The position numbers and the translations under genes are program-made. A DNA stretch of 64,000 bases from Cyanophora paradoxa CCMP329 (Eukaryota; Plantae; Glaucophyta): contig QPMI01000457.1 in the NCBI GenBank assembly GCA_004431415.1, positions 372,001 through 436,000 of the forward strand, written 5' to 3'. Below, in pieces: positions 1 through 63,500 of the stretch. Within the stretch, counting starts at the first letter, position 1; each line of letters starts with the position of its first letter. Below the pieces are notes generated by a model that saw nothing but the letters and a program-made list of their open reading frames with translations, was not told where the DNA came from and did not search any database.

Positions 1-441
1 TGTAGCTAGCAAGCAGAGCGCGAGGGGGTCTCGTCGACGTCGGCGTCGGACCCCCCGACCCGTAGGACTCGGATTTGTTGTAGCTCGGGGGGCGGGTACG
101 CCCCCAGAACCGTAAAATAAACCATCGATTACTAAGTTACTAGCTCAAGCTTAAGGGGCTAGCGCTCGGGCTGTCCGCCATTAGACCGCCAATTGCAAAC
201 TCCAGCCCAAACTTGGCAAACTTGGCGGCTAGTCGAGCCGCCGGGCCGGCTGGCGGCCAGCTTGAGGGCAGCCTCTTGCGCATGCTGCGCATGCTATAGC
301 TAAGTTGCCATATGCATGGCCAGAAGTCCTAGCTATATATAGCTATATATAGGCTTCCGGATCCGCGATTTCGCGGGGTTTCGCGCCCGGGGGGCGGCGG
401 GGGCCCGGCAGCGGCGGCGGGGGGCCGGGCCCCGGGTGGTA

Positions 442-713
442 CCGTAATGAGAATATTAAGGTCTGTACTTTATTATGTCATCCCCAAATTACGTCGCCTC
501 TGACGTGCGATAACGACATAATTCGGGACCGTCATGGTAGGGCGCCGGCACGCTCAGTGGTACCCAATCAAATTTACCGTCCATATACAGCCTAATACAG
601 GCCTGAAAATTTCATGCCGACATAATTTGGCCATGGGGGCGTCATATTTCGCATGCGCATAGAGAAAACTCGGGTTTTACAACGACATAATTATATAAAA
701 TATAATATTACGG
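442..713. mobile_element. Putative MITE (Tc1/mariner/pogo-like, TA target)
   Basis: TA|CCGTAAT at 440-448 and ATTACGG|TA at 707-715 form short inverted ends. The AT-rich interior has repeated CGACATAATT (~515, ~618, ~683) and a partial inverted copy (~470). The TIR is short, so support is modest. Confidence 0.4.
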
Positions 714-1608
714 TATGCATATGTTGCGACTTCTTGTCATTCCGTTATATGAATGACTATTCTTAAAAACAAGTGCCTTCTTTTAGGTTCTTTATATTGC
801 TGTTAACGTTGCGTTACGAATCCGAAAAAGCGAACTTCAAGTAGGGGTACCGGTGCGGCTTTAAGCCGGCTTGTTGCGTGCGGCTTGACGGCCAAGCCAA
901 GCCAATTGCAAGCCGGCCGGCCGCGGCAGTGGCCGGCCGGCCATGATAATGATCATATGCATGAATGCATTTTTACAAATGCCGGCCGGCTCATTAGCAA
1001 ATGCATTTTGCAAGCGCGCTCAAGCTTGGCCCGCCTTGAGGCAAGCTTAAGCTTCAAAGGCTTAAGCCTAACTGTGAGGGGGGGCGGGTACTTTATTATA
1101 CCTACGTATACGGTACCCTTCAGATTCAGGCTTCAGCTTCGAATTCCGGATTCCGCATGCGGCTCCGACGGCTCGTTGGCGGCTCCAAGCCCTGCAGCTG
1201 AAGCGTTAGCCGCCGTTAGGGTGTGCTCAATGAATGGACAATTGTCGCTTGTTTAAACTTTGAAATTGCATCTTTTTTTGCGTCTGAGCCGCGGGGTCGC
1301 GGGGCGCCCGCGCCGGCCCCGCGGCCGCGGGCGCCGGCCGCGGGCCGCCGCGGCCCGCCGGCCGGCGCCCCGGCCGCGGGGGCCGCGCGGCCGCGGCCAT
1401 GGCCAAGCCGGGCCAACGCGCTAGTTCTAAACCTACAGTATGAGGCATATTTTATTTCCTGTACTAAATTAACTAGTTCTACAGTACGTATGCGGCATAT
1501 AATAGTATATGATCATGATATATATATGCCGCTATATACCAGGGTACTATAAATTCTATAATATGTCTATACTGTTAGTACTCTACTACTACAGTAGTAC
1601 TAATCTAT

Positions 1609-1754
1609 CTTCTGATCGTGTCCCTTCTCGTGATCCCTCTTGATTCTGTATATATTTTGTGCTAGTTTACTGTATCTTTGATTTGTGATTGCTTTGTTGT
1701 CTTTAATATCACTACCTACGGGGGGTTCGCCCCACCGTAGTCTCTCAAAAAAAA
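1609..1754 (+). mobile_element. Short poly-A retroposon (SINE or severely 5'-truncated LINE 3' end)
   Basis: Flanked by a 13-bp direct repeat AGTACTAATCTAT (1596-1608, 1755-1767). It ends in an A-run and carries a 3' stem-loop CTACGG-GGGG-TTCG-CCCC-A-CCGTAG (1716-1740). Confidence 0.8.
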
Positions 1755-1797
1755 AGTACTAATCTATACGATTCTATAGTCCCGTAATTATTATAAA

Positions 1798-1849
1798 CGT
1801 TAACGGTAAACGTTATAAGTTAACTAATAACTTATAAATACCGTTAACG
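1798..1849. repeat. Imperfect inverted repeat (hairpin/cruciform)
   Basis: CGTTAACGGTA..TTATAAGTTA ... TAACTTATAA.TACCGTTAACG. Confidence 0.7.
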
Positions 1850-2085
1850 CCGTGACGAACTTCGCCGCCGCCGCGTTGAACTTTCGGAAGTTCGGGCCGG
1901 GAAACCGTTGAATCGAACGGGAACTTGAACAATGTAACGGCCGCACGGGAACTTATGTCGTGACGCCGACGTCACGCCGTCACGTCGCCGTAACGGCGAG
2001 TAGGCTCGGAGTAGCCGACGAGTAACCGTTGAACGAACCAATGACGGTCGCGATCGGCAATGACGGCGGAATGATTGAATGTAGA

Positions 2086-2311
2086 TTGCAATTGCATCTT
2101 GCAAGCTTGAAGACTAAAATCAAACGTTAAAGTTTGCAACTTTAATTTGCAATTGCAACTTGCATTGCAACTTGCAACTGTTGCCAAAGTTGATTCAATG
2201 AGAACACTGACAAGCTTAAAGCTTAACCTGAAGTCTTAACATTGCAACTTTTAATTTGCAACTTCAAGCTTAAAGCTTAAAGCACATTGCAACTTTTAAT
2301 TTGCAACTTCA
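2086..2311. repeat. TTGCAA/AAGCTT-rich low-complexity repeat
   Basis: 28-bp ACATTGCAACTTTTAATTTGCAACTTCA at 2239-2266 and 2284-2311; CAAGCTTAAAGCTTAA twice; many TTGCAA units. Confidence 0.75.
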
Positions 2312-2762
2312 TGCATTTTAAATATTAATTTATAGTGGATACTAGTAGTACTACTGGATAGCTATAGGGACATTGACGTCACTGTTTCTGACGTCGACAG
2401 TGATGTGACACTGATGTCGCGTCGTCGAGTCCGGGCACTGGCCGGGGCCGGCGCCGGGGGGTCTCGCTGACTCTCGCATCGGCCGGATCGGCCGGCGGCA
2501 GCCCCTCTGCAGCTGGATCCCCGGAGTGATCGGACTACCTAGCTACTACGTGTACCGTCACTACCGTGTACGGCGCCTAGCGCGGCTTTTCAAGTTTGCA
2601 TGCTTTTGCAATAATTGCCAGGCAATGCCAGCCCGCCGGGCCGGTGCAAACTTGAAAGTTGAGCAACCTCTAAGCTTTCGAACTTCGGAAGGTAGTCCGA
2701 GTCTGGTATATACTGGTATACATATAAACTGGTACTGCCAGGGCTGTAGTCTGGTACTAGTA

Positions 2763-3027
2763 CTGTAGGAATGCTTAAATTGCCGCGTAGTTAAATTGCC
2801 GAATTCGACCAAAACCGGAATTGCCGAAATTGCCGAATTCGACCAAAACCGGAATTGCCGTGGCGAGAAATTGCCGAAACTCTAGATCTGGATCTCGTCT
2901 ATGGCACCATACAAAATCGGCCGTGTAGCCCTACCCCCTGAGAATTGCCGTGGCGTAAAATTGCCGAATTCGGCCTCTCGGCAATTTACGGCAATTTAAA
3001 ACATCGGCTAGAAAAGCGATCCTACAG
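2763..3027. mobile_element. Putative MITE with AATTGCCG internal repeats
   Basis: GTACTGTAGGAATGCTT (2760-2776) matches the reverse complement of AAGCGATCCTACAGTAC (3014-3030) at 15/17, with TA flanks. There are eight forward AATTGCCG (2778-2959) and two inverted copies (2979, 2989), plus a duplicated AATTGCCGAATTCGACCAAAACCGG. Confidence 0.55.
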
Positions 3028-3242
3028 TACCGTACTACTAGGCTACTGTGCGGCGTCACGGCGTACTACGTAGTACGTCACTCACTGAGTCACGGCGTAA
3101 ACGGTACTACCGTAGTACGGTATAACCGTATAGGCTGTACATGTGCCACGGTGCCACGGTGTAGCGCAGCTCTGCACTGGCAGGCTGCAGTGCGGCATAC
3201 TCAGTGGCAGTCAGTGCACGTGTTACTACGGTGTTACTAGTT

Positions 3243-3338
3243 AGCGCTGCAGCCTGGCAGACCTAGGTTGTTCAAGAGATCAGCGCTGCAGACCTAGGTT
3301 GTTCAAGCAGATCTAGATCTGCAGACCTAGGCGCTGCA
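3243..3338. repeat. Short tandem duplications just upstream of the membrane-protein start
   Basis: GCAGACCTAGGTTGTTCAAG x2, GCAGACCTAGG x3, GCGCTGCA x3. Confidence 0.7.
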
Positions 3339-3368
3339 AACAACACAGTGGATGCGCTGCGCATGAAT

Positions 3369-6300
3369 ATGGCTCGACGGCCGCGAGCTTCTTCTAGATC
3401 TGTCGCCACACGCACCTTCGGCGTTGTGCAACTATGCATCGTGGCGGCTATCCTCGCAGTTAGTTGCGCGGGGCTCGCCGCTGCCGCGTCTCAGCCCGCC
3501 ATCGGCGACGAGCTGCTGCGCCTCGACTGCGGCGGCCGCCTCCACGTCTTCCCCAACGGCTTTCTCAACGCCACTTTTGACGCGAGCCGCTTCGTGAAAG
3601 GCTCGGGGCTCGCCGAGGTCTTCGTCAGTGCGTGCATTTCTGCAGCGATGCGCGTGTATATATGTTGAGCGTATGCGGACATAAATGCACGAACTTGCAT
3701 GAACGTTAACTTACATACCTAATCATGATCAAGATCCAACATTGACCCCACCCTACGCGTTTCCCGCGCAGAGAAGCTCAAGGATCGCTTGAAATGCGTT
3801 GTAGAGAAGGAGAAGCAGGGAGGCAGCGCGGAGATCACGGACGAGCATTGGTACACGGGGTGGAGCCTGGGCCCACAGGCCGTCGTCAACATCTTCCGCT
3901 CCGTCGGGCGTCGGACGTTCGATGGTCAGCCCGCCTTACGTATACGCTATCTGCTGAAAGCAATGATGGTTTTATCCCTGACTTTCCAATCTGCGCTGGG
4001 AAGCCCTCCCCGCCGCATTGCGGAGTGCGATGCGGAAGACGTACCTGCGCTTGCCCTTCTTCTGGAATTCGTGGTTCGACGTGCGCCCGCCGGCTCAGGC
4101 CTGGCTTCCACGTGCGTTCATTATTATAAGAGTATTGCATACAAATCCGTCTACGCATGCATATGCGGGGTGCCGACCCTTTGCCCTGCCAACGCAGGGA
4201 CCTGTCTCGGCGACGGGCCCTGCTATATGACACTTGACGCTCGCGAGGCCATCGGAGCGACTTTTAAGGTCCGTCTTCCGATGGAGCTCGAGCTCGAGTT
4301 TATATATATTCGAATTCATTACATAGACAATGAGCACAAAGTTCCGACGACCCCGACTGACGACCTGTTCGATTCGGATCCGTGCTTATATTTCAAAATT
4401 AGGTCGCGTACGACCTGTGCCCGGCCACGCACCTCCCCTTCCTGTCGGTCATGTGCGAGGGCTCCATGTGCTCCCGCTTCCTGCGCCCCTGTTCGGTGCG
4501 TTCCTAGGGCTCTCGCACGCCGCTATCAGTTCATGATCATGCGTCGAACATCTCAACTGATATCGATTGTTGTAACTACGCGAATTTCGCCTTTTTGGAT
4601 GCACAGGCGGACGCGGACTGCCAGACGAACTCGGCCGACACGGGCTCGCGGTGCCTTTCGGTCGGGCAGAACCCCACCACCCTGGAAGTCTTCACGGCGC
4701 TCAAGGTGCATATGCATATTATCACGTCCGGCGGTCGATATTCAGTAGCTTTGGCCCAGTGGGCAAGCTTAAAGTAAGCTGACACAAGATAATTTACTTG
4801 AACGCTTGCGCAGGACAAGCTGCTGTACGATGATGCCGACTCCAGTGAGCTCGCAAAAAGCGTGATGAAGGTGCAATCGTTCAAGCTTAAATGTAATTCC
4901 TACATATGCCTATAGCTAACCAAAGGGCGCTCATGAAATGACAGGACTTGGTCAATTACTACCGCTCCATCTTCGGCCTGGGTCCGGATACCTCCGACGT
5001 GCGTTATATAATTAGCTTTGAACATGTATTTGCACCTGAGTTACTCTGATCGTTCTCGCGCTCCGGCACCCCTCTCCCCTACAGACCCCGTCCTACAAAG
5101 TTTGCGCGTTCACCTCAAGTGCGCTTATAGCTATATATGCTTAAATTGTTTGCAATAGCGATCGCGATTTCGCGGGCCGTTGAATGCTCATGATCACTCA
5201 AACAGCTCAACTGAACCTCACTTCGACGGATGGAAATCTGATGCAAGCGGCGCGGCCCATCTGGCAAGCCATATGGAACACCAACGTCCTCTATCCCTAC
5301 ACCTACAGCTACACCTCAAGCCCATACGGGTATACTTCGACTAGCCAGTACAGGGGCTTGGACCTGTGCGCCGTCTCTCAGTTTCGCAATTAAGCTTCAG
5401 CATCCGAGATCTGAGTTCGAATTCGAATCTGAATTCGTACATCGCCTGCGGTCGCAGTTGGCCCTCGCTGTACCAGTGGCTATCGAAGGAGCTGGCCGGC
5501 TGCTCGACTTCGGGGGACACCACCACGTGCTCCAAGATCTCCGACTGGGACGGTGCGCATGCGCATGCGCATGCGGTTATTTACTTTTGCGTGCACGTGG
5601 GGATTTGATCGTGATCGTCCTGATTTAATCTCATCGTGTCGCGCACTCGTGATATATCGATGGCAGGCATCATAAAGCTGACGGACGGCACATCCAAGGC
5701 CGCCGACGCACCGGTTCGTTGATTAAATATTTCTTTAGCGTTTGATCTCGAAGTTCGAGCGCGCGCGCGCGAGGCTCCCGCGACCGCGGCGTCCTCTGAC
5801 TGTCGGACATTTCGCAGGAGCGCAAGCTCGGCCGCGACATCGCTTACTCCGGCCCCCGCGTCGTGCTCGACTCCGACAAGCCCGTCACGAAGATGCTTGC
5901 GTTTGACTGCGAGGGTACGCGAGCATTCGCCCTTTTCTGCAGCTCCAGGTCTGAGGTTTGAGTTCGAGGCCGACCGGCGTCCCCGGGCCCCCGCAGGCGG
6001 GCTCCACGCTGCGCTGATGAATTTCGGCCTCTCCGCGCGCCTCCCGATCGTCCGGCCCGTGGTGAACTGGCTCGGCACGTACCTCAAGCAGCTCGAGGTC
6101 CGCCGCATGCATGCGCCCAAGGAGCTCGAGGGCCGGGCGCCGGCCCGAGGATCATTGCTCATCCGCCTCTGCAGGCGGCTCGCTACCAGGCGCGCTCGGT
6201 CGCCCTTCCGGAGAACAGCAAGATCTACTACGCCCCGTGGACCGCCGCCTACCTGCTGTGCGCCGGATTCGAACGCGCCGCAGCTGCCGCGCATGTGGCC

Positions 6301-9300
6301 TGATCGAGGCCAACGCGCGCGTCGCAGGTCGACGTTCACCAACGCCCCGAACCAGCCCGCGAAGCCGGAGCTCTCCAGTTTTTACGGGGCTTCCGCCGCC
6401 CCCGTCTTCGATGTGCGCACTGCGGCAAATGCATCTTGCTGTAGACGTAAATTCCATCTAACTGAGCACGCGATGCGCAGGTGTCCAAGACGGACTGCAC
6501 GTTCGACAAGCTCGGCAGTCAGGGGTACTGCATGGGAGCCGTCGGTCAGCTGCAGATGCATCCCCGGCCCTACCTCGCATTCGCACGCGAGCGCGAGCGC
6601 GAGCGCCGGTCGCCTGATCGTTGAGCGCAGCCAAGCTCCTGCCGAACGGCCTCAAAGTTGAGGGCGCGCTCGCCCAGTGTCACGGAGAGCCTTCGGGCCT
6701 CCCCGCGTTCGAGATCGGAATATCAGGTTCGCTTCTGCCGAAGCTTCGGTCAAGCAGCTAGATCATGGACTAGAATATTGACATGCTGTACCGGTGTAGG
6801 TCCGGGTGCAAATCACTTGACGGTCCACCAGGTCTGTCTGAAGCCAGTCTAAAAATATTCTGATCTTTTCTAAATCGGATTGATCATGAATGTATGCAGG
6901 CCTGCAAAGAAAACAGCGACTGCGGCAGCTCTGCCACGTGCGAGAACGTCGAGTCGACGCTTGAGGATGGCCTTGACTTGCCCCGTGGCTTTTTCGAAAT
7001 TTACGACACCGTCTCAAACGCAGTCTGGGGGTGCGGACGCAAACTTGACTTCAGCTGCGCGGAAAGGCACCAGTTGAAAATATTTCGGCTCGCAGAAACG
7101 GCCCGCTGCCCCCACCACAGAAAGGCGACATGCAGATGAACGAGATCATGGTCCAAACCAGCGACTGCTCTAAAGATCCCGATAGCTACTCGTATTATTA
7201 CAACGACTACTATGAGTATTTCAGGACTTGCCGCATGTGAGTTCGGATCGATACGTCGATCGCGATGATCATAATCGAGCTCGGCCTTAATCTGTCTGAT
7301 TTTTTGTGCAGCGACGTGGAGTTAGCTCTGAAAGAATTGCTGGGTGATCCTTACAAGATCGTGCCTACGGATCGGACGCAACTGGATCTCCATTTCTACG
7401 ATGCGAGCAATAATCGAATTCCGGTGACAGTCTCAGAATGCGTCCTCAAAACCAACCACGCGATAAAAGGAAGTCTTAGAAACTGCGTGCCCGTTCGAAC
7501 ATACAACAACCCCAACGGCACTGCTAGTCCGGACTACGTGCTCAGTGAAAGCTCATTGCTTACAGTTCCGCTCAACAAATACACGAACTCTTACTACTAC
7601 TCCTCCGGAGAATCAATTTATCTCGACAACACAACGCGGATCGCTCTCAGGTCTATCGGAATGGTGCATCTCGGCGCTTGGTTAACGTTGTTACTTATCA
7701 CGTTGGTATTTTCGCGTTTTCAATACTTATGCCTGGCCCGCTACGCCCATGCATAGCCGCAAAACAAGACCGGTATGCAGACAGATGTGGTTTACCGCGT
7801 GGACGGAACGATAAATAAGGCATGTGCACTTGACGCGATCTTCGAACCGCGGCTTCAAAAGTGCTGCCAAAATTGATCCCGGCCATACAGGTCGAACTTG
7901 TCGCTAAACAGGGGGAGATTCTCGATTCAGTGCAGCTTCAAGTGCCCGTCGACGAACGTATGACGTGCAGTGATTACAGGTTCTAAATTCACCAAGATTG
8001 CTCATCTTCAAGCTTGCTCGCTGATTTTCAATACAGATCGAAGGACTTCAGCGGTGACTGGGTTTGGAAGACTACCGGCACAAGTCGTGCCAGCGCGAAT
8101 GCGACCTGCAATCCTTCATTAGGGAAACGGAATGAAGTGTGAGTATAGTTTTATATCATCTATATCGAATATTAATGTGCTGAATATTGATTTGAATCCA
8201 ATACGCACGTGCACAGTAAACGGCTCGTTGACGCCGTAGAGGAGGGCCTCTTCAAGATCATCACCATCAAATCACACGGACAGAACTCGTATCCTCAAGG
8301 CTATGATGATCGTGAATACTCCGAACGTCAATATCTAGATACCTACCGCGATACTTATTCTAGGGAGGGATACGTGAGTCAATAATGAACTTTCGGAATG
8401 TTACGTGTGCGCGAGATTCTGAAAGGTCACGACTTTCCGCAGTTCCTCGAGGTTGTGTACTCGCCAGAAGCGAAACTCCCTCTCCGCGTGGATCGACAGC
8501 TGCAGTTCGAATTCTACGGAAAACGCGTTGATTTCGACGACAGGGGATACTACAACGTCACGACAGGGCAATACATACAGAAAAATGAATGGACGACGAG
8601 CTCGACTGATGTTCTCATCGCGACGGGATACATGACTTCATCCGATACAGTTTATCCAGGCAGCACCATCCAGATTCGTCTTGAAGGAGGAGGATTCACG
8701 AACTACACCACGTATCCTCCTCGAACATCCTATCCTACGTACCTTGCAGGCTCTATCTACATCCGCGCCTACAATGAGCCGTGCGTTGAAGAGTCCGGGC
8801 CCCCCAAATATTAAGTCTAGCTATAGGATCTCTAGAAATGTGCAAGGGCCGTGTGTCCGAGGTGATCCTTAAAATTGTCGCATTCTCAGGCCGAGATCGT
8901 ACTCGTACAACACGCAATCATCTTTGCCAATCGCGGAGGCCAAAACCGAATTTACCTTTACAGAGCCTTCTGGCGGCTTGCACGGCTGCAGGTTCGAACT
9001 CGAGCTCGCTCGCATACTGCAGCTCAAGAATGAACCGTGCGCATGCTGACCGCGTACGCTGCTCTAGGCTTCATCGGAGCTTGAGGCAAAGCGTTCTCGG
9101 AGACTGGAAGCTTGCCTGCCCTACCTGCGATTCTCCGGCTGGCTTCTGGCCTCCTGCAAAAATCGCTCTGGAGCGGTCCGGATCCTTTCAGCAAAAGCTG
9201 CGAGCAGAGGGGAAGTTGTTTTTTGATGCTTACCCTGACCTTCTTCCAATGGACATGATTTCTATTCCGAACGGAATGGAGAAAACGCACCCCACCAACT

Positions 9301-12300
9301 AGTGCGTTTACCCTTGTATTTCGCAATCTCGTCTGCGCGCGCGACCGGGAATTGCAGTTGGTACTTCAACTACACTCGCGAAGACTACAAGGCCGGCAAA
9401 GACGTTCCCAAGACCCCGACCTGCGAAGATATCCCCAAGTTCTGCCCGGCGGGCAGCGCAGCCCACAAATACTACTCGAGCGAATGCGCGAAAATCGTGA
9501 AAGCGGATCCCTTCGTCGTACCGTCGTACTGGAAAAACGACAATAACTACGACTCATGGGGCCCCCCGCCCTTCTGGGACCCGAAAGGCCCCTTCGGCCT
9601 CCCTGGTCGAGTCAACGAGTATGTGCCCATCGTACAGTTTTTGATATCGCCAGTTCCTGCTCTGGCTGGCTTCATCTCCATGGTCTACACTACGTGCGCT
9701 TGCTTGTGTTCGAGAAAGATTTGCAGGTCTACGTGAATGATAATCTATAACGGCGCCTTCTCTCTTTTTTTTCGCAGAAACGCAAGGGTTCGCGCCAAGC
9801 CTGGGACATATATGCATTTAAGTTTGCTTGCGTGTACATGTAGGGGGATTTTCCGTGCGTGCTAACTTGCCGTCGCGATCGCTGCTAGGCGTGGAACTGG
9901 AACGATATCCGTTGGTTTGGAGCGTATTACACAAGTTGGAAACTGTTCTTCTACGACCCGACGAAGTCCCCCAATCCTGCCGAGTACACGGACGCCACGA
10001 AATTCCTCTTCGGGCCCGACGTGCACGCCCTCCTCGAGAAGACGTGCCCCGCCGACGCCCCTGCGACGCCCGCCATCCTCTTCAGGGACGTCATGAACCT
10101 CCAGGCGCGCGAGACACTCTTACCCACGATCGCGAGTGCTTTTTGTATGTAACCTGCGGGTTTCGGAGCGCAGGCGGAGCGCACGGGCCGCAAGACCGTG
10201 AGCGAGGCGAAGGTCCGGATGTGCCTCCCCGCGACGGTGGACTCGCTCCTCAAGATCAAGGGAGTCGACGCGCTGACGGAGGACCGCAAGTATGTCGCGA
10301 TGGAGGTCCGCAGTCGTCTTTGATTTGAAGGCCTAGCTGTAGGCGCGCGCGGAGGCGCCTCATGATCACCCCGTCCGGATCCACAGGCGTCGAGCATCCC
10401 GGCGGGCGTGGCGGCGATGAAGGTGACGCTGGCGCTCGGGATCAGCAAGGCGGACTTCACGGAGGCCAAGCAGCAGGCCTTCCTCCAGGACGTCTCCGCC
10501 ACCTTCAAAGTCCCCCTCGCCCGCCTCAAGATCCTCTCCGTCGACGTGCGCGCGCACACACACACGCTCGCATTTACATTCGAATTATATGCGCGAGCTG
10601 TACATGTGAACGTCGAGGGTCTTCATTGACGAGACGATCGCGCGCAGGAGGCTCGAGCTCAGCGGCGATCCCTCAGCGCCGCGGCCGGCAAGGTCAACGT
10701 GCAGCTGGAGGTCACCGGGGCCCCGGGCACGGATGCAGCCTCGGTGCGCTTAATGTTTGGATTCCGCAAACAGATTCTCAACCGGGCGCTCGTGATCATA
10801 ATCGAGATCATGATCAGGTCACGAGCTCCATCCAGTCCGCGATCAATGCGCAAGTCCTGCGCGGGGAGACCGCGAATCTGCAGTTCGGCGGCATTTCTGC
10901 GACCGGCGCAATGGCGAAGGTGCGCGTGCACACTGTCCACTTCCCCGACGCGCCGCATGCGCACAGTAAGAAGCAGTGATCGCAAGACGCACCTCTTCCG
11001 GATGCGCAGATTAATATTCCGGATCCCAAATCTGGAGCGGTCAGCACAGGCGAGGACAGTCAGGATTATCGTGCGCATGCAGTTAAACGTTGCGCCTTCG
11101 CCGCATGGATTCCGTGCAAAACTCTGTTCGGTTTCGCAGTCTATATTCCTGGAGTGCCGGCCAGCGCCAGCGATCCCGCCCAGGTCGACGCCATCTGCAA
11201 GACCATCTCTAGCTGCGGCACATGCGCCGGCTCCCTCAACGGTGCGGGATTCGGGCTTGTCATTGGATGCTTCATACGACAGCGATCGCGATCGCTGAGA
11301 GCGGCGGGCGGTGGGGGGCGCCCGTGCGCAGGCCAGTGCGGCTGGTGCGGGAGCTCGTGCGGCGCTCTCAGCACATGCACCTCTACCCTTAAAATCTCGG
11401 AACCGGCGAAGTGCTCGTTCTGGAGTGCGTTTCCCACCACAATATTCACGTCTGCGTGCTTCGGCTCGTCTCACATTCGCGCTCTGGACACGCACGCGTG
11501 CAGGCCCCTTCACCCTCGTCTTCAACCACACGGACACGGTCCCCGAGACGTTCTTCACGGCCCAGGCGACGAAGGACGAGTTCTCGTCGTGGTTCGCGGC
11601 GCTCCTCGACGTCAAAGCCGCCGACATCAAGGTAGGCTTATTCCTTAGATCCCGCCTCTATACTTAAGCTTGCTGGCCATGGTGACGCACACAATCTTCG
11701 CAGATCTCGAGCCTCGCCCGGGGGTCGGTCATCGTGAAGGGCGATGTGGCGTCTGCGGTCTCGCAGGCGGCCGCCGACGGCCGCGCCAAGAGCCTCCTCA
11801 CCCTCGTCTCGGCCGCCGGCCCGCGCACCGTCGGGGGCGTCAGCCTGCAGGCGTCGTGCGACGCCGGCGCCTGCTCGGCCCCGGGCGTGACCCCGCCCTC
11901 GAACACGGACCCGGGCTCCACCGGCTCGGGCTCCGACTCGAACCGCGACAAGATCATCGGCGGCGTCGTGGGCGGCGTCGGAGGCTTCTTCTTCCTCCTC
12001 ATCGTCGGCACCATCGTGTGCGTCCGATTCGAGAATTCGAAGTCCACGCCGCGCGCCCGGCCTCCGCGCTGCATCCGCTCGTTTAATTTGATTTGGAGCT
12101 CACTCTTTCTTCTGCGCACAGGTACTGCTGCTGCTGCAAGAACCGCCGCAGGAAGACGGACACGAAAGGGAAGAAGGAGAAGAAGGGGAAGAAGGGCGGC
12201 AAGGGCGGCGACGCCGACGGCGACGTCGAGGCGGGCAAGGCCCCGCCGCCGCCGCCGCTCGCGGTCGGCGGCCCGGCGCCCTTCCCCGGGCCGCAGAACG

Positions 12301-18674: not shown

Positions 18675-21600
18675 ATGAGCTTCTGTTGCTTCGTGCACCG
18701 GCCAGACGCGCCGATCGCGAAGTGCTGCAGAGGAGCCCTCCCTTCTTCCCCCCGTCTAGGACTCACTCGGAAGCGATTCGATCCCACTGGTAGAGGAGAT
18801 GAGGGTTCGACTCCGGCGACGCTCCCATTTTCAAAAAGGGCGGCGAACGCGATGAAGGGCGCACGGGCGCGCGGTTCCGCGCAGCGGGCGGGATCACACA
18901 AAGCATCGGCATCGCAGAGATCCCACGCCAGCCGCAGCTCCGAAACCTCCAGCTCTGACGACGAGGTTTTGACGCCTGTGATGAATTTTTCGAAGCAGCT
19001 CCAAGCGGCGTTGCTCGGCAACATTCGGCGCATGATCGGCGAGCAGGCACCAGCTCGCGATGCATCCAAAACGACCGATCCATCCAAAACGAACGATGCG
19101 TCCAAAACGACCGAGACCGAGGACTCCAGTGTCAACATTAAGACCCCGCCGCTGCTGACTTACCGAGGACACGCCAACTTCCACTGTATGTGCACGCGCG
19201 AGAGCGTCTGCGATCCTTGCAAAGAGCTCTCGTCAAGCCTGCAGTCCTTCGCGCTCCCCAGCAATAGCGAAGCTGAGCTCCGCAAGTATGCGGCGGACTT
19301 GAAGGTCTGACTCCCGCCTTCGCGAGCTCGAGCGCCTTTTTGCCCCGATCCTCACTGCGCGCCTGCTTGCAGGCGTACGTGGAGCATCTGGGGCCGAAGC
19401 ACGCGCTGAGCGCTGCCTCCACGATTCGCCTCGCATACCTGCACTGGACCATCGCGAACTCGGACCGGATCACGGCGGGCGAGCGCCAGAAGGCCCAGTC
19501 CCTCGGCGAGGCCGTCAGGCTCTACGAGGCACGCTGATGGCCCGCCCCTCTGCGCCGCGCGTGCGCCGGGGGCTCACAGTGGCGCCGGCGCGCGTCCCGC
19601 AGGCGACGCTGGCGCGCTACGCGGAGGACGAGCGTCTGCTTGCGGGGAGCAGGCGGGAGGCGCTGGCGGACCACGCGGAGGCGCTCGCCGCGTTCCACAG
19701 CGACCGGAACGACGCTGCCGCCGTCAAGCGCGTCCTCCTCGTGTGCCATCTCGCCTCCCCGCCCCGCGCCCCGGCTGCCTCGCGCCTCGCCTCGCCTCAC
19801 GCCGCCGCGCGCGCGCTCGCGCAGTGGGCGCTCTACTGGCGGCAGGGGGCACTGGGCCCGGCGCACGAGAAGACGGTGCGGACGGAGTACCTGCTCGGGG
19901 TCTACCTGGAGGACCTGGGTGAGCCCGACAGCGCCGAGGCCTACTTCAAGGTAGGGCGCGCCGGCCGGCCCCGGCTCCCTCCCGCGCCCACAGCCCCGGC
20001 CCGCGCCCCGCAGTCCGCGTTCGCGCACGAGCGGGAGTCCGGGAACGAGGGGCGCATCGCGAAGGCGGAGTGCTGCGACGCCCGCCGGGGGCTCGCCGCC
20101 GTCGGGGCCGCGGACACGGACGCGGCCATCGGGAGGATGGTCGTGGGCTCCCTCGTCGCCATCGGAAAGACGCACGTCACCGCCGGGCGCTTCCAGCGCG
20201 CCAGCGGCGTGCTCCAGGTACCCCTTTCCGCCCCCGCGAGGCCCGCCTGCGCGGCCGAGCTCGAGCGGCCCCCGCAGATGGCGAGCGCGATCGCGGAGCG
20301 CGTGTGCGACGGGTGCGCGGAGCGGTGCGCGCTGGAGGGCCCCGCCATGGCCCTCGTCGCCCTCTGGTCCCTCCTCCACGACTTCGACGCCGCCGAGGAG
20401 GTCCTCCAGGTGCCGTACCCCCCTTTCAACTTCCCCCCCCCCTCCCCGGCCGCCCGCCGACCGTCCCCGCAGCGTCTCATCGCGGAGACGGAGCGGCGCC
20501 TGGGCGCGGGGCACTGCCGCGTGGGCTTCGCTCTCGTGAGCCTCGCGCGCTGCCAGCTCGCCGCTGGCAGGGACCCCGTGCTCATCGCCCCCTCTGCCCG
20601 CGTGCGCCGCCCCTCTGCCGCGCCCCGCTCGCCTCGCCTCGCCTCGCCGCTCATGGCTGCGGCAGCGCGGGTGGTCCGTCCTGGTGGCCGCGCTGGGGCC
20701 CACCAGCCCCGAGGTGGGGGAGGAGCTCGTGACGATGTGGGCCCTGTACGAGCAGGCCCCTAGCCTCGACCCCGGCAGGGCCGTCCACAGGGTGCGCGCG
20801 CCCCCGCCCCTCGGCCCCGCCGACACCGCTCACGAACAGCGGCGCAGCTCATCGTGGAGTGGACGCGTGCAAACGGGCAGGCCCCGCCGGGCCTGCCCGC
20901 CCAGGCCATGGTCCGCCCTCCCGCCCCCGCTCGCCCCGCGTCGAACGCTGCCCAGGGCGCCTCGCTGACCGCACCGCAGCTGCGCATCATGCGCGGGGAG
21001 GACCGCGCGGAGTCCGAGGGGGGAGCCGTCGACGCGCTCCTCGCCGGCAAGCTGGAGCAGCGCAAGCGGGAGCGCGAGGAGCGCAAGCGGGCGGAGGAGG
21101 AGCGCGAGCGGGCGCAGCGGGAGGCCGAGCGCGCCGAGCGGGTCAAGCGCGACGCCTCGGAACGGGTGCGCCGCCCGGCGCCCGCCCGGCGCCCGCCCGC
21201 CCCCGCCGAGCGGCGCGGCAGGAGGCGGCCCAGAAGCACATGAAGGGCTCTCAGTGGGCCCCCGCCCGCAAGCTCCTCGACGCCCTCCTTAAGGTCTCCC
21301 CGCCGCCGGCCCCGCCGCCCCCGTCGGCGCCCTCTGAGAGGCGTTCCCTCCCCCCCAGCGCTCCCCGGACGACTTTGAGGCTCGCCTGCTCCGCATCCGT
21401 GCGCCGCCCGGCACCCTGCTCCGACCCCGCTGACGCCGCGGCAGAGTGCACGGTGGGCGCCGGCCAGCTCGAGGCGGCCGGGAAGGAGGCCGAGAAAGCG
21501 GAGCGCGAGCTCGCCGGCTCGGGCGCAAGCGCGGACGTCCTCCGCCGGTGCGCGGAGCCCGCCGCCTACTTTCGCTTGGGCGTCGAGCGGCGCCACAGGG

Positions 21601-54509: not shown

Positions 54510-57500
54510 ATGGCCATGGATTCCGAGCATGCTCCACTCACGGACCTGCCGCGTACGCGCGTATACGCGCGTTCTAGATCTGCCGCTCGCCGCATTCACC
54601 GCATTCACCGCATAAGCTCATTAATATTGATCGATTTCCGGGAGCCGCAGGCGACGTGCTGGCAAAGATCCTGACTCTGGCGGCCGACAAGTCGACGCTC
54701 GATGTCGAAGGCGCACGCGCGACGTGCCGCGCGCTCCGGTCCGCAGGCTCGTTTCTTCGCTGAAGCTTGCCGAGCGGCCGATCTTCGGGGTGCACTGCGA
54801 GATATTCATTGATATTTCTCGCTTTGCGTTGCGGCCCATGGCCACGGCTGATCAACGATTTCGCGCGCTCGCAAGGCAGCCGCTCGACAAGCGGGCGCAG
54901 ATCCTCGCCTATGTGAAGCGCAACGGTTCCTTGATCAAGGATCTCAGCCTCTGCGGCGTGCGTATGCACATGCGTGATTCCACGCTTCAATTCGAATACG
55001 AATTTCTCGAGCTCGAAACTGCAATATTGATCGAGCTCTTGATCTGATTGAAGGCCTTGCTTTCGCAGATCCTCACTCTGGTTGCGCATGCGCCGATTTT
55101 ATAGGATTGATTATAATATTGAGCAGCAAGAGCCTGCAGCTGAAGCCGTGCACAGGGGAAGACGGACGTCGCGGATCTGCTGCGGGCGTGCAGCAAGGGC
55201 TCCCTCGAGCGCCTCAGCCTCGCGCACGTCCGCTCGCGCGGCTCCGCCGACGTCGCGACTTCCCCCACCGACCGCAACTGGTTCGAGGGGTCCGTTCGCA
55301 CTTGCTGTCTCGCACCCGCGCGCGGCCGCCTGTGCTCGCGCGCGCGGTGCCGCTCTTATTCTGCCCGCAGGCAGGGCGCGCTGAACTCATGGCCGCCACA
55401 CGTGAAGGGCCTGCGGGTTGTGAACCTCTCGAACGCGTGCGTCCGCATGAAAGCCCTTCGCTCCCTCCTCCAGGCGAACAAGGACACCCTCGAGGTTCTC
55501 CTCCTCGCGTGCGCGTGCTCGTTGCAATCACGCTTCCTCTTGGCCTCGCCGACGCTCTAGGCAGGGGCACGACGCCGTACGCGCCCGCGGTCCTCGGGAA
55601 GCAGACGGACGCGATGAAGGCCAAGGGTAAGGCCACGCGGGAGGCGAATGCCGCCAAGAAGGCCGCCGAGGCCGGCAGCAGCAAGGGCGCGCGCAAGCCC
55701 AAGGCCAGCGACGAGGAGGACGAGGACGAGCTCGAGAACGTCGACGAAAACGAGGATCCGGATCCGGAGCGGGAGGAGGCCGAGGATCCGGACGAGCCAC
55801 CGAAGAAGAAGGCAAAGGGGAAGGCGCCGGCGAAGGGCAAGGCAAAGGCCGCGGGCAAGGGCAAAGGCGCGGGCGGGGGCGGGGGCGGGCGGGGCCTGAG
55901 CGCGGCCCCGGGCGACGTGCTCGACTCGGTGACCTCGGCCATCCGCGGCCTCAAGTGCGATCCCTGGCCATCCCGTTTTCCGGTCCCGGCCGACACAGGG
56001 CGCAGGCTGCCGCGGCTGCGGGTGCTGGACGTGAGCGGGACGGTGCTGCGGCGGGAGGTCCTCGTCGACTTTCTCGCGCTCAATCCCGGCCTCCGCACCC
56101 TCTACGCCGTCCGCCCTAGCCTGCGCCTCGGCCGCTTGTTGCCGGCTGCAGACTTCACGCGCCGCGCAGCACGGGGACGCGGTGCAGGTAGTGCAGGTGC
56201 CCGTGGAGGTCGACCCCTTCTGGGGCCCCGACGAGGACTGGGAGGAGGGGCAGGAGAAGACCGCCCTCAGCAATCGACCCTGGTCTTTGCTGTAGATCTT
56301 GATCTAGATCCCCCGTCCTCTTAGCTCCCGGCTCACGCCGTCGCGGCAGGAGCAAGGAAGATCTGGAAGCAATGCAGGCTTCGAACCCGTCGCTGCAGAT
56401 CGTCTCCGAGGGCATCGCCGCCGTCGTCCGCGAAGCCTGCGCACGACTGCGAAACATGCCTCTGACGCTGAACCTGCGCAGATCAAGGAGATCCCCGAGG
56501 TGCTCTGGGACCACAACGGGTTGGCGGCGGACGCCTTCGTGCGCGCGCGCCTTCCCCTCGCGCCGATGGCACCGTCGCCGATCGCGATGGCGTGCAGATG
56601 GAGAAGGTGAAGGGGCTGCTCGCGGCGGGCGGGACGGCCCACACGCGGGACTCCTTCGGCATGACGCTGCTGGCGGCGGCCGTGTGGTTTGCCTGCACGA
56701 AGCTCTCCAGGGCGGGCGACGAGGAGCATGAGTTCGCCGCCAGCCTCGTCCAGCGCCTCATCCGCGAGGTCCGACCCGGCCCAAGACCCTGGCCTCCCGC
56801 TGCGCCGCCCCTCGACCCGGCCCGCGAAACCGCAGCACGGCCTCGACGCCCGGGTCCCCGTTCTGCGCCCAGGTCCCTGGATGGCCGCCGCAGACCCCGC
56901 CTTCGAGCCCTTCGTGCGCGCCGCGCCCCCTAATCTTATGTGTTGAGTCTGATCACGACTTCCGCGCCGCAGGCGCCCGTGCACCCTGGCGAGCTCTTCA
57001 TGGAGCACCCACAGCTCGAGCGGCGCCCCTACTACGGCATCGGCTACACCACCCCGGGTCCGTGCGAGTGCTGTGCGAGAGAACCGGCGCACTTGCCATG
57101 CCTGAATCCGGCTCTGCAGGCACCGGCTGCAACGTGCTTCACATCTGCGCGCAGCTGAACGCGTCCAAGGAGCTCCTTGAGGTGCACGTGCGCCCGCCGC
57201 CGCGAAATCGGCGCGAAATCGATCCTGTACATGCTTCAGCCGCTGCTCCGCGAACGGGCCGGCGAGCTAACGTCGGCGCGGGACATCGTGCACGGCGCGG
57301 TGCCCATCGCGGAGGCAGTCATCGGCCGACTCAACCTGCCCGCCTTCCGCGTCCTCCTCGGCAAGCCCCGCCCCGCGAAATTAAACCCCCTCCCTCCGCT
57401 GACCAGACGGCAGACGTGACTCCCACGGAGGCCCTTACAAAGGTCCGCTAGCGCTGTCATTCGCGAGCATCTGATCTCAGCCAAGCGACCCCGCATGCGC

Positions 57501-60500
57501 ACGCAGTACGTGGACCGCATTCAGATCGCCCCCGCCAGTGCCGAGGCGCCGGCGTCGCGCCGTGCGGGCCCAAGACCGCAGCGGGACGGGGACCCGGCCT
57601 ACCTCTCCCGCCGCACCACGGCTCTGCATGAAGCAGCGCGCGGGGCGGGGGACCCCAGGGCCCTCGCCGGTGTCGCATCCGACATTATAGCGGATGCTCA
57701 TTTATATGTGAGCCGCTAGGGCTCTAGATCACGTCAGCCTTCGAGCTGCTGGACCGACGGCGCCTAGGCTAGTTAGAGCGCCGCGGTCACTTGTATTCGT
57801 GTCGGGGTACGCCGTATCTGGACGGGTACACCCAGTGAGTTGGATCTTAGCGACGACAGCAGTGACACTCGCCATTCCCCGCCCTGCCGAGCTTGCACTC
57901 CGCACGGGCTTCCCGCGCGCACGATTAGGCACACTAATCTCGCACGCGACAGGCGCCATTCTGCCGGAATCGAACCTTCAAGGGTCGCTGGACTTCCAGG
58001 CTCTGCCCGCGCCGCGCGCCTCGCCGCGCCGCCCCGCATAAGCTTAGAGAGATCTGGGACGAGCTTTCCGGGCGACCGCCACTTGTGGCGTGCTACGCTG
58101 CACACTTCGGCCGCGTCGCCTCTGGGCGGGCTGATTGTGCTTCGGAAGTGACTCTAGTGTCCCTCGCGGGCTTCGGTGCATCCCCAGACCGAAGCGCACG
58201 CACGAGCTCTCGCGAGAGTCTCAATCATTGTCTGTGTCCCTTCGCCGGTTGCACGCTTCGCGTCGCAAACTGTGCCCCGGAGTCTGCCAGCGGCAGTTCT
58301 CTGAGTGTCCCTGAGTCGGTTCTCGCACGCCACGAGAAGACCGTGTCCCGGATCTGCAGTGCGCTGCAGATCAAATCTTGCGCCCTGGCATTCTGTTCTC
58401 GTGGCTATACGCTGCAAAGAGAGCAATATGTCGAACACTTCTGAACTGATCAGTTCTGAAGTCCGTAGCCGGCTGTCTGCCCTCGCGCACATCGAGCCCG
58501 CCCAGGGCTATGCTGCTGTGCATGTGCAGCAACTCGCTGCTGGCTCCGCTGCGGCGGATGATGATCCCGTGCGGATCGCATTCCTGCCTGCAAATCCGCG
58601 CCTCGCCGATGGCGACCGGTTCCGGAAGGACGTGCGGAACTTCCAGTCGTCCCTGCCGACGAAGTACTTGTTTGGCCCGGATTCTGCCGGTAGCCAGGAG
58701 TACTCAAAGTCAGAGGCGCTAGCCGGAGTGATTGTCGGGCGGATCCGCCCCGGACCTCTCCGCGCTGAGATTGAGCGCAAGCGCGACCTCTATGAGGCCT
58801 CTGTCACTGCCCTCGAGCATGACCGCGCCAGGCTCGCTCGTCTCGAAGCTGTCCCGGCAGACCTGCGGTCCGCCGAGGATGATGCTGCTATCCTCGCGCT
58901 GCAGCAGAGCTGCGTGCGTGATCAGGCCTCAATCGTGGCCGTGCGCGACTCGTACTTGCGTGCCCCCGGGCTGCTTGACACGATCACTGCGTGGATTCAC
59001 GAGACCCGCCCGCACGCGGCCCGCCGGGCTCTCACTGAGCCGTACACGGGCGAGGACCCCCGCTCGTGGCATGACTGGTTCTTGCCCCTCGTACGGCACA
59101 CGCTGCCGCGGGGCCAGCAGTTTGCTGCGTACTACGCGGACTGCCTGCGCACCGCGCTCGAGGCCCGCTCGACGAGCGAGGACCCTGAATATCAGAACCT
59201 TGATGTTCGGATGGCCGGGTTCGCCCAGGCGAACGAGCGCACGCTGCGCGAGTTCCTCACGGCGCTGCGGCAGCGCCTCCTCGCCAATAACGGCGCTATC
59301 TCGCCGCTTGAGCTTGACAATATTTTCGTCGAGCAGTGCAAGCGCCACGGCTGCCGCGCCGTGTTCCCGCCTGCGCTGGCAGCTGCCGATCGCGAGCTGC
59401 CCGAGGCAAAACGGACCCGTATCCTGCAGGCACAGTTTGCCGAGGATGAGTCCTCGTCCGCCGGCACCCCTGCCGCTGCACGAGCCTCGAGCTCCCTTGG
59501 CCCTGCTGAGCCTCGGGATGCAAATTCCACGGCCCAGCCCTCGATTTCTGCACGTGGGTCCTCTTGGGCCGTGCAGTCCCGCTCGCCTGCCGCTGTTGCG
59601 GAGGTGCTGCGGCGCATGTCCGAGCTCGGGTACCCGGAGTACCCCCCCTCAGACTGCTACGGGTGCTCGGATGACCCAGCGTCCCCGTTGAGGCGCGACG
59701 TCATTGGGCAAATGTGTGCCCCAAGCGCACCCCGTTCGCCCCAGTACGCCCCTGGGTCCGCCGCGGCCAGTACTATCGGCAAAAGCGATCCCAAGAGGAT
59801 GCTGCCAACAAGCACGAGTACTGGTCCGACGAGGGAAACCAGGACCCAGACGAAGTCTGCGGTCGCTGCGGCGAGGCAGGGCACCACCACAGTGCCTGCC
59901 CCGACCCCCCCACACGGGCTGCTCGCTCGAGCTCTGCGCTTCCCGCGCCCTCTAGCTCAGCGGCTCCACCCGCGCGCCCTGCGGCGGAGCGTGAGTGAGC
60001 AAGTGCACCAGCTGCACTAGGGTCTGGCTGGCTTGGGCAGCCGCCAGAAAAGCCCTGCTCGTAACCGCGATCCGATTTTTCGCGGAGCCTGGGCCTCCCC
60101 TGCGAGAGCCCCATGTGTCGCTGTAATAAGCGGCCCATATACCTGCCTCTGAGCAGGGTGTATATTTGTACATTTGTACATAATTTCAGACGTCGGGGAC
60201 GACGTCTTCCGAGAGGAGGAGTGAGCACGGGCATGCTGCACGAGCAGTGCAAGCGCTGCCGCTCGCCCTCCCGCCCCGAGGCTTGCTTGAATCTGTGGCC
60301 GCTGGCCAAGATCGAATAGCACTCGCGAAAGAAGAGCCCCAATCGCGTGCTTTCGAGCACCCTGAGCGGCCACGGGTGCCCCTCTTTCCGAGAGGAGGAG
60401 TACCTCTTTCGCTGAAGCCTGCGAAGAGGCGCCACGGCCGGTGCCGCAATTGCGAGCCCTCCTGCTTCCCTCAATTTAGATCCGTGGCCGGTGGCCGAGA

Positions 60501-63500
60501 TCTGATCTCAAACCCCAAGCGGGTACCAGTCTTTCCGAGAGGAGGAGTCCCTCCGAGACTCTCTCGTCGAAAGCCTGCGATTTCGCGCGGCGCACTGCAG
60601 TTGCTGAGTGCGGCCATGGGCCTTGCGAAATCCAGAAATTAAAAGTGGCCTCAGGCCTTGCGGTCAGAGCTTCAAAGGCTTGAGCCTGATCATGAGCCGA
60701 GCCGCCAAGCTGCAGCTGCAGCTGGCCCTCGCGGGAGGCTTTGAGCTCGAACCCCCACACTTGAGCGAGCAAGCGGCCTTGCTGCCGTTGCGAGATGAGA
60801 CGTGATCCACGGAGCCTTGAGCTCGGGATGCACCCTCAAGAGAAGCTTGATGCATATATGCCTGAGGCACGATGCCCAGCCGGCGAGCGCCTGATGGCAT
60901 GCCGTGAGCTTGACAGGCGGCCCGTGAGCCCCTGCAAAAATCGTGAGCCTCCGAGCTTGAGCACAAGGTGCCCTCGAGAGCTCGAGCCCTGAAATAAAGT
61001 CCTGGCGCGCCCCGAGGCGGCCAGGCAATAGCAGGCTCTGCCATGAGCTTTGCAGTTCTTTGAACTCAAGTCCTGGTGACGCCCGCCAAGTTGGCGCCCA
61101 GGCCGCGCGGGTCTGTTCCGGGATCATCGGATCCGGACTGAACGTTAGCGGGGCGAGGGGCCCAGTGCCCCGCCCAAAGACCTGGTGAACTGCCCGACGA
61201 GTTGGCATCCAGGCGGCACACTGTGGCTGCAGGCCGAGTGGTGCGACGGGCTGCGAGCCCTGCTCACAAGCTAAGAGCTTTGAGACCCGGCGGCCAGCCT
61301 GTTGAGGCGGCGCCAGAAGGACCCCCACGATCGTGAGTCTCGTCTCGCATGTGGCCGGCCCGGCCCCAGGGCGCGGTCGTGACGGCGGGTGGTCCTGGCC
61401 AGGAGCGGCTTGAGAAAGCCGGCTCCAAGCCGCGTCCCGGCCCCACACGAGGGCGAGGACAAGAAGCGGCGATGCCTGCCTCCGAGCAGAGCGAGCACAA
61501 GAGGCCACCCGTGAAGGGTTGGGCTGAGAAGGGCCAAGCGCCCGCGAAATATCGCGAAAGTCCCGAGCAGAAGTGGTGCGCTGCGGGCGGCCGTTGTCCT
61601 TGAGCACAGCTCGGCACGGTGACAGGGCGGAAGACCCTTGCAAAGACCTAGCCGAGCCCTAGGACGCGCCTTGCGTCTGCAGAAGGGTCGGTGGGCGGCT
61701 GTGACGCCGGGTTCTGCCCCGGGTACAGCGACAGGGGATGACAAATTCCCCCTCCGTGTAAGACCTGGTGTGGTACCAGGGCGCGCCTTGCGCCGGCAGG
61801 GGTACACGCAGGCGGTCGTGACGCCGGGTTCCTGCCCCGGGTACGACGACGGGGAAGCAAAAATACCCCCAGCAGGGCTCCGCACCAGGGACGCTTGGTG
61901 GCGGACCGCCTGAGAGGGCCACGTCCCCTTTTAATAGATGTGCACCCGCGGGTCGGGCAGGGTACCTCCCGTCGCGCAATGGCGTGGAAGGGCACCTTGT
62001 GGGCGGCGTCTAGCCTCGCCCTGGAGATTCTAGCTCCACCGCCGTCGGGGGATTCCCGATCCGACGCCGTGATAATGCAGTGAAGGCACGGTGTTTGCCT
62101 GAGCAGCGGCGCTAGTCGAGCTGCTTAGCCCTAAGTTTTGGGACGGGCATTTCGCTGTGGGCTGCTGAGCGCTGTCGCGAGCGCTGCGCCCCGCGTTGCT
62201 GTTGCAGCGTGTGCCTTTGCAGCTAACGTGCTGCACAATCGCGATGAGGGCAGGGCCCCCTCGGCTTCCGTCCCCTTCCGCTCGCCTCGTGCGGGTTGCC
62301 TGGGCCGCCGGCCCGAAGTTGGACCTCGCCCCCTGGGCACTACACGCTGGAGTCGTGCCGGCACTTGCCGGGCATCAGTCTTTTCTATTCCCGGCAGTCG
62401 ACGCCGGGCATGGACATGTACATAGCCGGACTTGGTGTCTTTTCTATTCCCGGCAGTTGCCGGCCACGGACGGACGTTGAGCCTTTTTCGATTCCGGCAG
62501 TAGCCGGTTGATATGTATTTATTTAGACCCGCGCGGACGCGGGATCCGAGAGGAGGAGTTGTCGCATCCGACATTATAGCGGATGCTCATTTATATGTGA
62601 GCCGCTAGGGCTCTAGATCACGTCAGCCTTCGAGCTGCTGGACCGACGGCGCCTAGGCTAGTTAGAGCGCCGCGGTCACTTGTATTCGTGTCGGGGTACG
62701 CCGTATCTGGACGGGTACACCCAGTGAGTTGGATCTTAGCGACGACAGCAGTGACACTCGCCATTCCCCGCCCTGCCGAGCTTGCACTCCGCACGGGCTT
62801 CCCGCGCGCACGATTAGGCACACTAATCTCGCACGCGACAGCCGGCTTCGAGGCCGGCGCGGTGCTGCGGAACGCACTGGAGGGCACGTACGACTCCGGC
62901 TTGACGGACGAGTGGCGCTTCCGCAAACGCCTCGTCAACCTCAATTTCGCTGCCCGCGACCCGCTCTCCACCGACGCCCTGATCGCCCTCGCCGAGCGCT
63001 GGCCCCCCGGACTCGTCACCTACGGTGGGAGGGGCCGTTCACGATCGCCAGCGCGGCTGGGGCCGGGCTCACGCCGCTGCAGACATGCTTGGACATGTGC
63101 GCTCGATAGACAACGGGCAGACGCCGCTTGAGATTGCGCTGGGCCGGCGGGACCTTCCGAGCAGCGTCCTCGCGCGCCTCCTCGTCATCGCTGCTCCGCC
63201 CCTCAGCGACCCGCTCGCCTGCGGCGCCCAGGCCCTTCAACAATTTTCCTCTTCTCCTTGCCCTCTTCGCTTTCTTATCCCCCTGCAGCTCGCATACGCG
63301 AAGGCGCATGCGGGGTGGGGGGCCCGCCGGCCGCCCTTCTCGCCCGAGGCGGAGCCGGCGGCCATCGAGGCCCGCGCTGCCTTCGAGCACCACGCCCGCC
63401 TCCTTGTACGCGTGCCCGTGTACTCTAGATCTCCCTCCCGCGGCCGGGCCCGAGGCTTTCTGCATGCAGGACAAACTCGCGCGCGCTGCGGCCGCCCGCG

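Follow-up and report, generated by a model that had tools for sequence, protein, structure and literature searches.

A young gag-only LTR retrotransposon of Cyanophora paradoxa whose primer-binding site shows the 13-nt spacing of selenocysteine tRNA

The 64-kb stretch of Cyanophora paradoxa DNA analysed here (referred to as the window) contains a single pair of long direct repeats, located at 57671-57951 and 62560-62840. The repeats carry TG..CA ends and are bordered by a target-site duplication (TSD), with a primer-binding site (PBS) beside the 5' copy and a polypurine tract (PPT) beside the 3' copy, which is the arrangement of an LTR retrotransposon. The preliminary description of this DNA had proposed an LTR element with a PBS at 57952-57976, and this proposal was confirmed, as both LTRs, the TSD and the PPT are present and the block directly abuts the 5' LTR. 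The identity of the two LTRs at 281/281 positions points to a very recent insertion. The results thus show that 57671-62840 is a young, multi-copy, gag-only LTR retrotransposon of C. paradoxa. Its features are as follows:

57671-62840, + strand: LTR retrotransposon, whole element of 5,170 bp, recognised by paired LTRs, TSD, PBS and PPT
57666-57670, no strand: 5' copy of the 5-bp target-site duplication GCCGG, adjoining the 5' LTR
57671-57951, + strand: 5' LTR of 281 bp, TGTCGC...GCGACA, 281/281 identical to the 3' LTR
57952-57976, + strand: primer-binding site of 25 nt, abutting the 5' LTR with a spacer of 0
58428-59741, + strand: gag-like ORF with its ATG at 58428, belonging to no Pfam family
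59858-59899, + strand: CCHC zinc knuckle of the nucleocapsid type, within the ORF 59714-59998
60020-62377, + strand: internal region with no recognisable pol and with three additional copies of the PPT block
62378-62506, + strand: three repeat units, each a T-rich tract plus TTCNATTCC(C)GGCAG, followed by a short hairpin
62487-62500, + strand: "anti-PBS", an exact 14-nt complement of PBS positions 57961-57974
62548-62558, + strand: polypurine tract GAGAGGAGGAG, ending one base upstream of the 3' LTR
62560-62840, + strand: 3' LTR, 281/281 identical to the 5' LTR
62841-62845, no strand: 3' copy of the target-site duplication GCCGG, adjoining the 3' LTR

The surroundings of the element were also inspected. 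When the empty site was rebuilt from 57370-57670 and 62846-63146 with one TSD copy, one frame stayed open over about 180 codons, and hence the insertion may interrupt a host ORF. The window itself shows a strong compositional break, with a G+C content of about 52% at 1-10000 versus 75-81% at 14000-53000.

In terms of coding capacity, the element offers a gag-like ORF and a CCHC knuckle, while an autonomous element would have both gag and pol. Searches with the Pfam families of reverse transcriptase, RNase H, integrase and protease gave no match in any of the element ORFs tried. As no pol family was found in these ORFs, the element is considered non-autonomous. The gag-like protein has nine relatives at 70-95% identity, and the closest of them (95%) represents a 9-member cluster built at 90% identity. 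Ten listed cluster members of the gag relatives are EukProt entries of C. paradoxa, and the remaining relatives bear gene names of the same style; relatives from outside C. paradoxa are not known. A zinc knuckle (PF00098) was matched in three of the relatives, P0006-P0008. It should also be pointed out that the gag and knuckle frames are out of register with each other in this copy (59675-59741), while they are united in the 95% identical protein P0001; this break could reflect a frameshift, an intron in the gene model of P0001 or an assembly indel. No homologues were found for pseudo-ORFs that span the PBS or lie in the leader.

The 3' part of the element is rich in repeated motifs. The three repeat units of 62378-62506 sit just upstream of the PPT, and their hairpins have the form CCGGC..GCCGG. 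The anti-PBS is part of the third unit. The PPT block TCCGAGAGGAGGAGT occurs four times, at 60208-60222, 60387-60401, 60534-60548 and 62545-62559. The last of these is the real PPT, while the three internal copies follow one another at intervals of about 150-180 nt and may represent central PPTs or be left over from tandem 3' ends. Folding of the leader gave nothing beyond shuffled sequences (z 0.41).

The plus strand at 57952-57976 reads GGCGCCATTCTGCCGGAATCGAACC, and its reverse complement is GG-TTCGATT-CCGG-CAGAATGGC-G-CC. Within the window this 25-mer occurs once, even when 3 mismatches are allowed, and it was recovered in 0 of 100 shuffles. When the complement is read as the 3' part of a tRNA, it provides G52-G53, the 7-nt T-loop TTCGATT, 13 nt, the discriminator G73 and C74-C75, whereas the T-loop and the discriminator of a canonical tRNA are separated by 12 nt. 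The canonical 5+7 parse places a C at position 73 followed by GCC, and since no CCA end is possible in this way, the canonical parse fails. Two parses close properly on G73 and C74-C75, namely 4+9 and 5+8. The former is the layout of eukaryotic and archaeal tRNA-Sec, and the latter that of bacterial tRNA-Sec. Therefore, the 13-nt distance between T-loop and G that had been proposed for this site is indeed seen in the reverse complement, and the 4+9 parse likewise bears out the proposed G73 discriminator and GCC...G acceptor. Judged from this organization, the block at 57952-57976 is very probably a PBS of the tRNA type, and there is a correspondingly high likelihood that the primer is a tRNA-type RNA.

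A peculiarity of the site is found at its border with the LTR. The junction reads CA/GGCGCC... (the slash marks the LTR end), so that A76 of a primer would face the terminal A of the LTR, just as the preliminary description had cautioned. The site thus reads CA/GG and offers no partner for the 3'-terminal A76 of a full CCA end. As the LTR ends in A, an A·A mismatch would result and block the extension of a normal CCA end; the primer would accordingly have to end in ..GCC. The lacking partner for A76 applies to any tRNA primer, which shows that the simple picture of priming at this site is incomplete.

Logan contigs from four runs of the same organism were aligned to the element (5,501 nt). A contig of run X15 (57856-58494) spans the PBS with 2 substitutions and no gaps. 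Because a short-read contig is gap-free here, the 13-nt spacing is not an error of the assembly or of long-read homopolymers. The summed word depth inside the element ranged from 950 to 6,500, compared with 120-257 in the single-copy flanks of run X1, and the highest value of 12,169 was reached in the bin 57868-58051, which comprises the LTR end, the PBS and the leader start. Among the best-supported variants listed, no substitution or indel falls inside the PBS, while an indel elsewhere has 1,900 of 3,575 depth among the same variants and weaker indels were listed elsewhere too. PBS variants at a low share may nevertheless occur. The top depth and the lack of listed PBS variants together suggest that the 13-nt form predominates within a family that is large and recently active.

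Some contigs join the PBS segment to other upstream sequence: one of run X15 has a loose end before 57930, and a further one of run X5 starts at 57957. As the upstream sequences differ, several families seem to share the block. The LTRs, PBS and leader are also covered by contigs from runs guessed to be RNA, which hints at transcription of the element. At position 57863 (and 62752), both LTRs of this copy carry a T where the listed contigs from the four runs have a C. A private T common to both LTRs is as expected if the substitution predates the insertion. Contig L002 (42% GC), picked up in a representative search as a possible sister copy, proved unrelated, with only low-complexity matches.

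Candidate host primers were searched for at several levels. Neither ARAGORN nor Rfam at gathering scores called a tRNA or tRNA-Sec in the window. With Rfam at E<=10, the 27-nt block gave an 11-nt T-loop match to tmRNA, and another match was masked by clan competition; the leader gave chance matches only. The 21-nt tRNA-sense end was further used in exact-pattern scans of metagenomes, viral contigs and prokaryotic genomes, which are collections without Cyanophora DNA. One metagenome match and two prokaryotic matches were considered as tRNAs and discarded as chance, since they lie in AT-rich sequence of the Bacteroidota type with no tRNA nearby. When the frame was read, the match in L004 was found within coding sequence, at the end of a bacterial gene (..FFDSGRMAQQYY..). 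No viral contig matched the 21-nt end. A full-text literature search with the sequence itself gave no match, and a tRNA-Sec sequence of Cyanophora is not printed in PMC6627142, PMC7678280, PMC5330540, PMC3531208, PMC13578239, the PlantRNA 2.0 preprint or the supplements. Elsewhere in the window, 18804-18835 reads GGTTCGACTCC, then CCGGCGACGCTCCC and ATTTT, which is a T-loop-like motif with a T run. It was not called as a tRNA by ARAGORN or Rfam, and about one motif like it (1 mismatch) is expected by chance.

The implied primer was then compared with tRNA-Sec. The acceptor-plus-T stem of tRNA-Sec amounts to 13 bp according to the Secmarker paper (PMC5330540), and the complement of the PBS shows this same 13-nt acceptor-plus-T strand. 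In 553 eukaryotic tRNA-Sec, the invariant positions are only the anticodon, G73, G18, G19, U33, U55, C61 and C66 (PMC5330540). Those that fall within the block, i.e. U55, C61, C66 and G73, are all present (4/4). The implied acceptor GCCATTCTG pairs with CAGAATGGC through G1-C72, C2-G71, C3-G70 ... G7-C66. Of the known RNA classes, only tRNA-Sec would pair gap-free over all 25 nt of the site in its present form. The preliminary description had made its reading depend on a tRNA-Sec in the host, and C. paradoxa is reported to retain this gene (PMC3531208, PMC13578239), as well as SecS, eEFSec and the remaining Sec machinery except SBP2 (PMC6627142).

In the mechanism proposed on this basis, minus-strand synthesis would start on a host tRNA-type RNA whose 3' end is paired with GGCGCCATTCTG... 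beside U5, and the pairing between primer and PBS could extend over 25 nt into the T-loop. A tRNA-Sec, with its 4-bp T stem and 9-bp acceptor, would serve with A76 absent or unpaired, and would end in ...CCGGCAGAATGGCG / ...GGTTCGATTCCGGCAGAATGGCG. The literature searched contained no retroelement with a tRNA-Sec primer, and the prior for such a primer is therefore low. Given these points, selenocysteine tRNA is put forward only tentatively as the primer of this C. paradoxa element. It is similarly possible, though doubtful, that a large active group of Cyanophora LTR elements, comprising gag-only members and a Ty3/gypsy partner, is primed by a tRNA-Sec lacking A76.

A primer of the ordinary 7/5 type carries about the same weight as tRNA-Sec, and neither of the two readings reaches even odds in our judgement. 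Here the primer would be a Lys- or Asp-like tRNA with G73 and an acceptor starting with GCCATTC, and the site would have gained one base, for which the CC/GG run of CCGG is the simplest place. Such a tRNA would end in GAATGGCG; its 3'-terminal 10-15 nt would be paired, a single base would bulge out, and pairing would resume at the T-loop block. GGCG-CCA ends are common among ordinary tRNAs. The behaviour of the run itself is in favour of this reading, as the motif near the 3' end of the element differs by one C in the same run (CC here, CCC elsewhere), and this difference between copies indicates that the run slips. In Ty1 and Ty3, moreover, the PBS does not take over the sequence of a mutant primer, and Ty3 gets by with 8 nt at its 5' PBS (PMC5371799). 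The distal spacing therefore need not mirror the primer and indels in the site can persist, so that the argument that the PBS of an active family must mirror a copied-in primer fails for such elements. On the other hand, an ordinary tRNA requires a coincidence, in that the site, once the base was inserted, happened to have G73 and C66 in the Sec register as well, and the well-supported indels listed include no deletion inside the block. The unpaired A76 is equally awkward for an ordinary tRNA.

The primer could also be a non-canonical tRNA-like RNA that ends in CC instead of CCA (...CAGAAUGGCGCC) and is supplied by the host or by the autonomous partner; a ..GCC end would explain the GG directly after the CA of the LTR. 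ARAGORN and Rfam found no such gene in the window, however, and we regard this source as unlikely. Some other source of priming is rated lower still and appears quite improbable. A further reading would dispense with a host tRNA and rely on self-priming or cyclisation via the anti-PBS at 62487-62500, in the manner of Tf1. Although the same transcript does hold an exact 14-nt complement of the PBS, all X1, X5 and X15 contigs over 62493 have one more C (CCC instead of CC). The exact match is thus private to this copy, or an assembly slip, and the extra C disrupts it in all other copies. Furthermore, the anti-PBS lies near the 3' end of the RNA and not at its 5' end, and it does not extend over the nine LTR-proximal bases of the PBS, from which synthesis has to begin. 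We therefore hold self-priming to be very improbable.

Comparison with known systems places the element among the tRNA-primed LTR elements and retroviruses, with which it shares a PBS beside U5, a PPT before the 3' LTR, TG..CA ends and a 5-bp TSD. It departs from them in that no T stands opposite A76, the spacing is 13 instead of 12 nt, and the complementarity of the Cyanophora site reaches 25 nt, into the T-loop. In HIV-1 and Drosophila gypsy the PBS is that for tRNA-Lys, and in Ty1 and Ty3 that for tRNA-iMet; like the tRNA-Lys sites, the Cyanophora PBS begins with (T)GGCGCC. Gag-only non-autonomous LTR elements of the TR-GAG type are known from plants. The present element resembles them in its LTRs, PBS, PPT, gag ORF with CCHC knuckle, absence of pol and multiple copies, and differs in its glaucophyte host and in a gag that belongs to no Pfam family. 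No autonomous partner of it was seen in the window. With eukaryotic tRNA-Sec (PMC5330540), the site has in common the 13-nt strand, G73, C66, C61 and U55, together with an acceptor that starts with GCC and ends with G. This likeness covers only the 3' 24 nt, seen as a complement, and of the T stem only 2 of the 4 pairs are reached by the complement. As in the bipartite PBS of Ty3 (PMC5371799), a sequence immediately before the 3' LTR is related to the interaction of PBS and tRNA. However, the 3' segment of Ty3 is complementary to the tRNA, i.e. antisense to its T/D arm, while the Cyanophora motif is in tRNA sense and would pair with the PBS itself; hence the bipartite arrangement of the Ty3 type was not found here.

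Which tRNA a retroelement lineage uses as its primer is one of its basic characters and is fairly conserved. If the primer is an ordinary tRNA, single-base drift in the distal PBS is compatible with continued activity of the family, and such drift would fit the finding that Ty1 and Ty3 do not inherit their primer sequence (PMC5371799). If tRNA-Sec is the primer, the element would be the first retroelement known to use it and would thereby represent a new primer class, and the 13-nt-spaced PBS would be a simple genomic marker for the family. A mobile element would then be linked to the selenocysteine system in an early-branching alga, and its replication would depend on a single-copy tRNA of low abundance, and specifically on the part of its pool that is uncharged and 3'-trimmed. 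A coupling of transposition to selenium status, as suggested in the preliminary description, is pure speculation.
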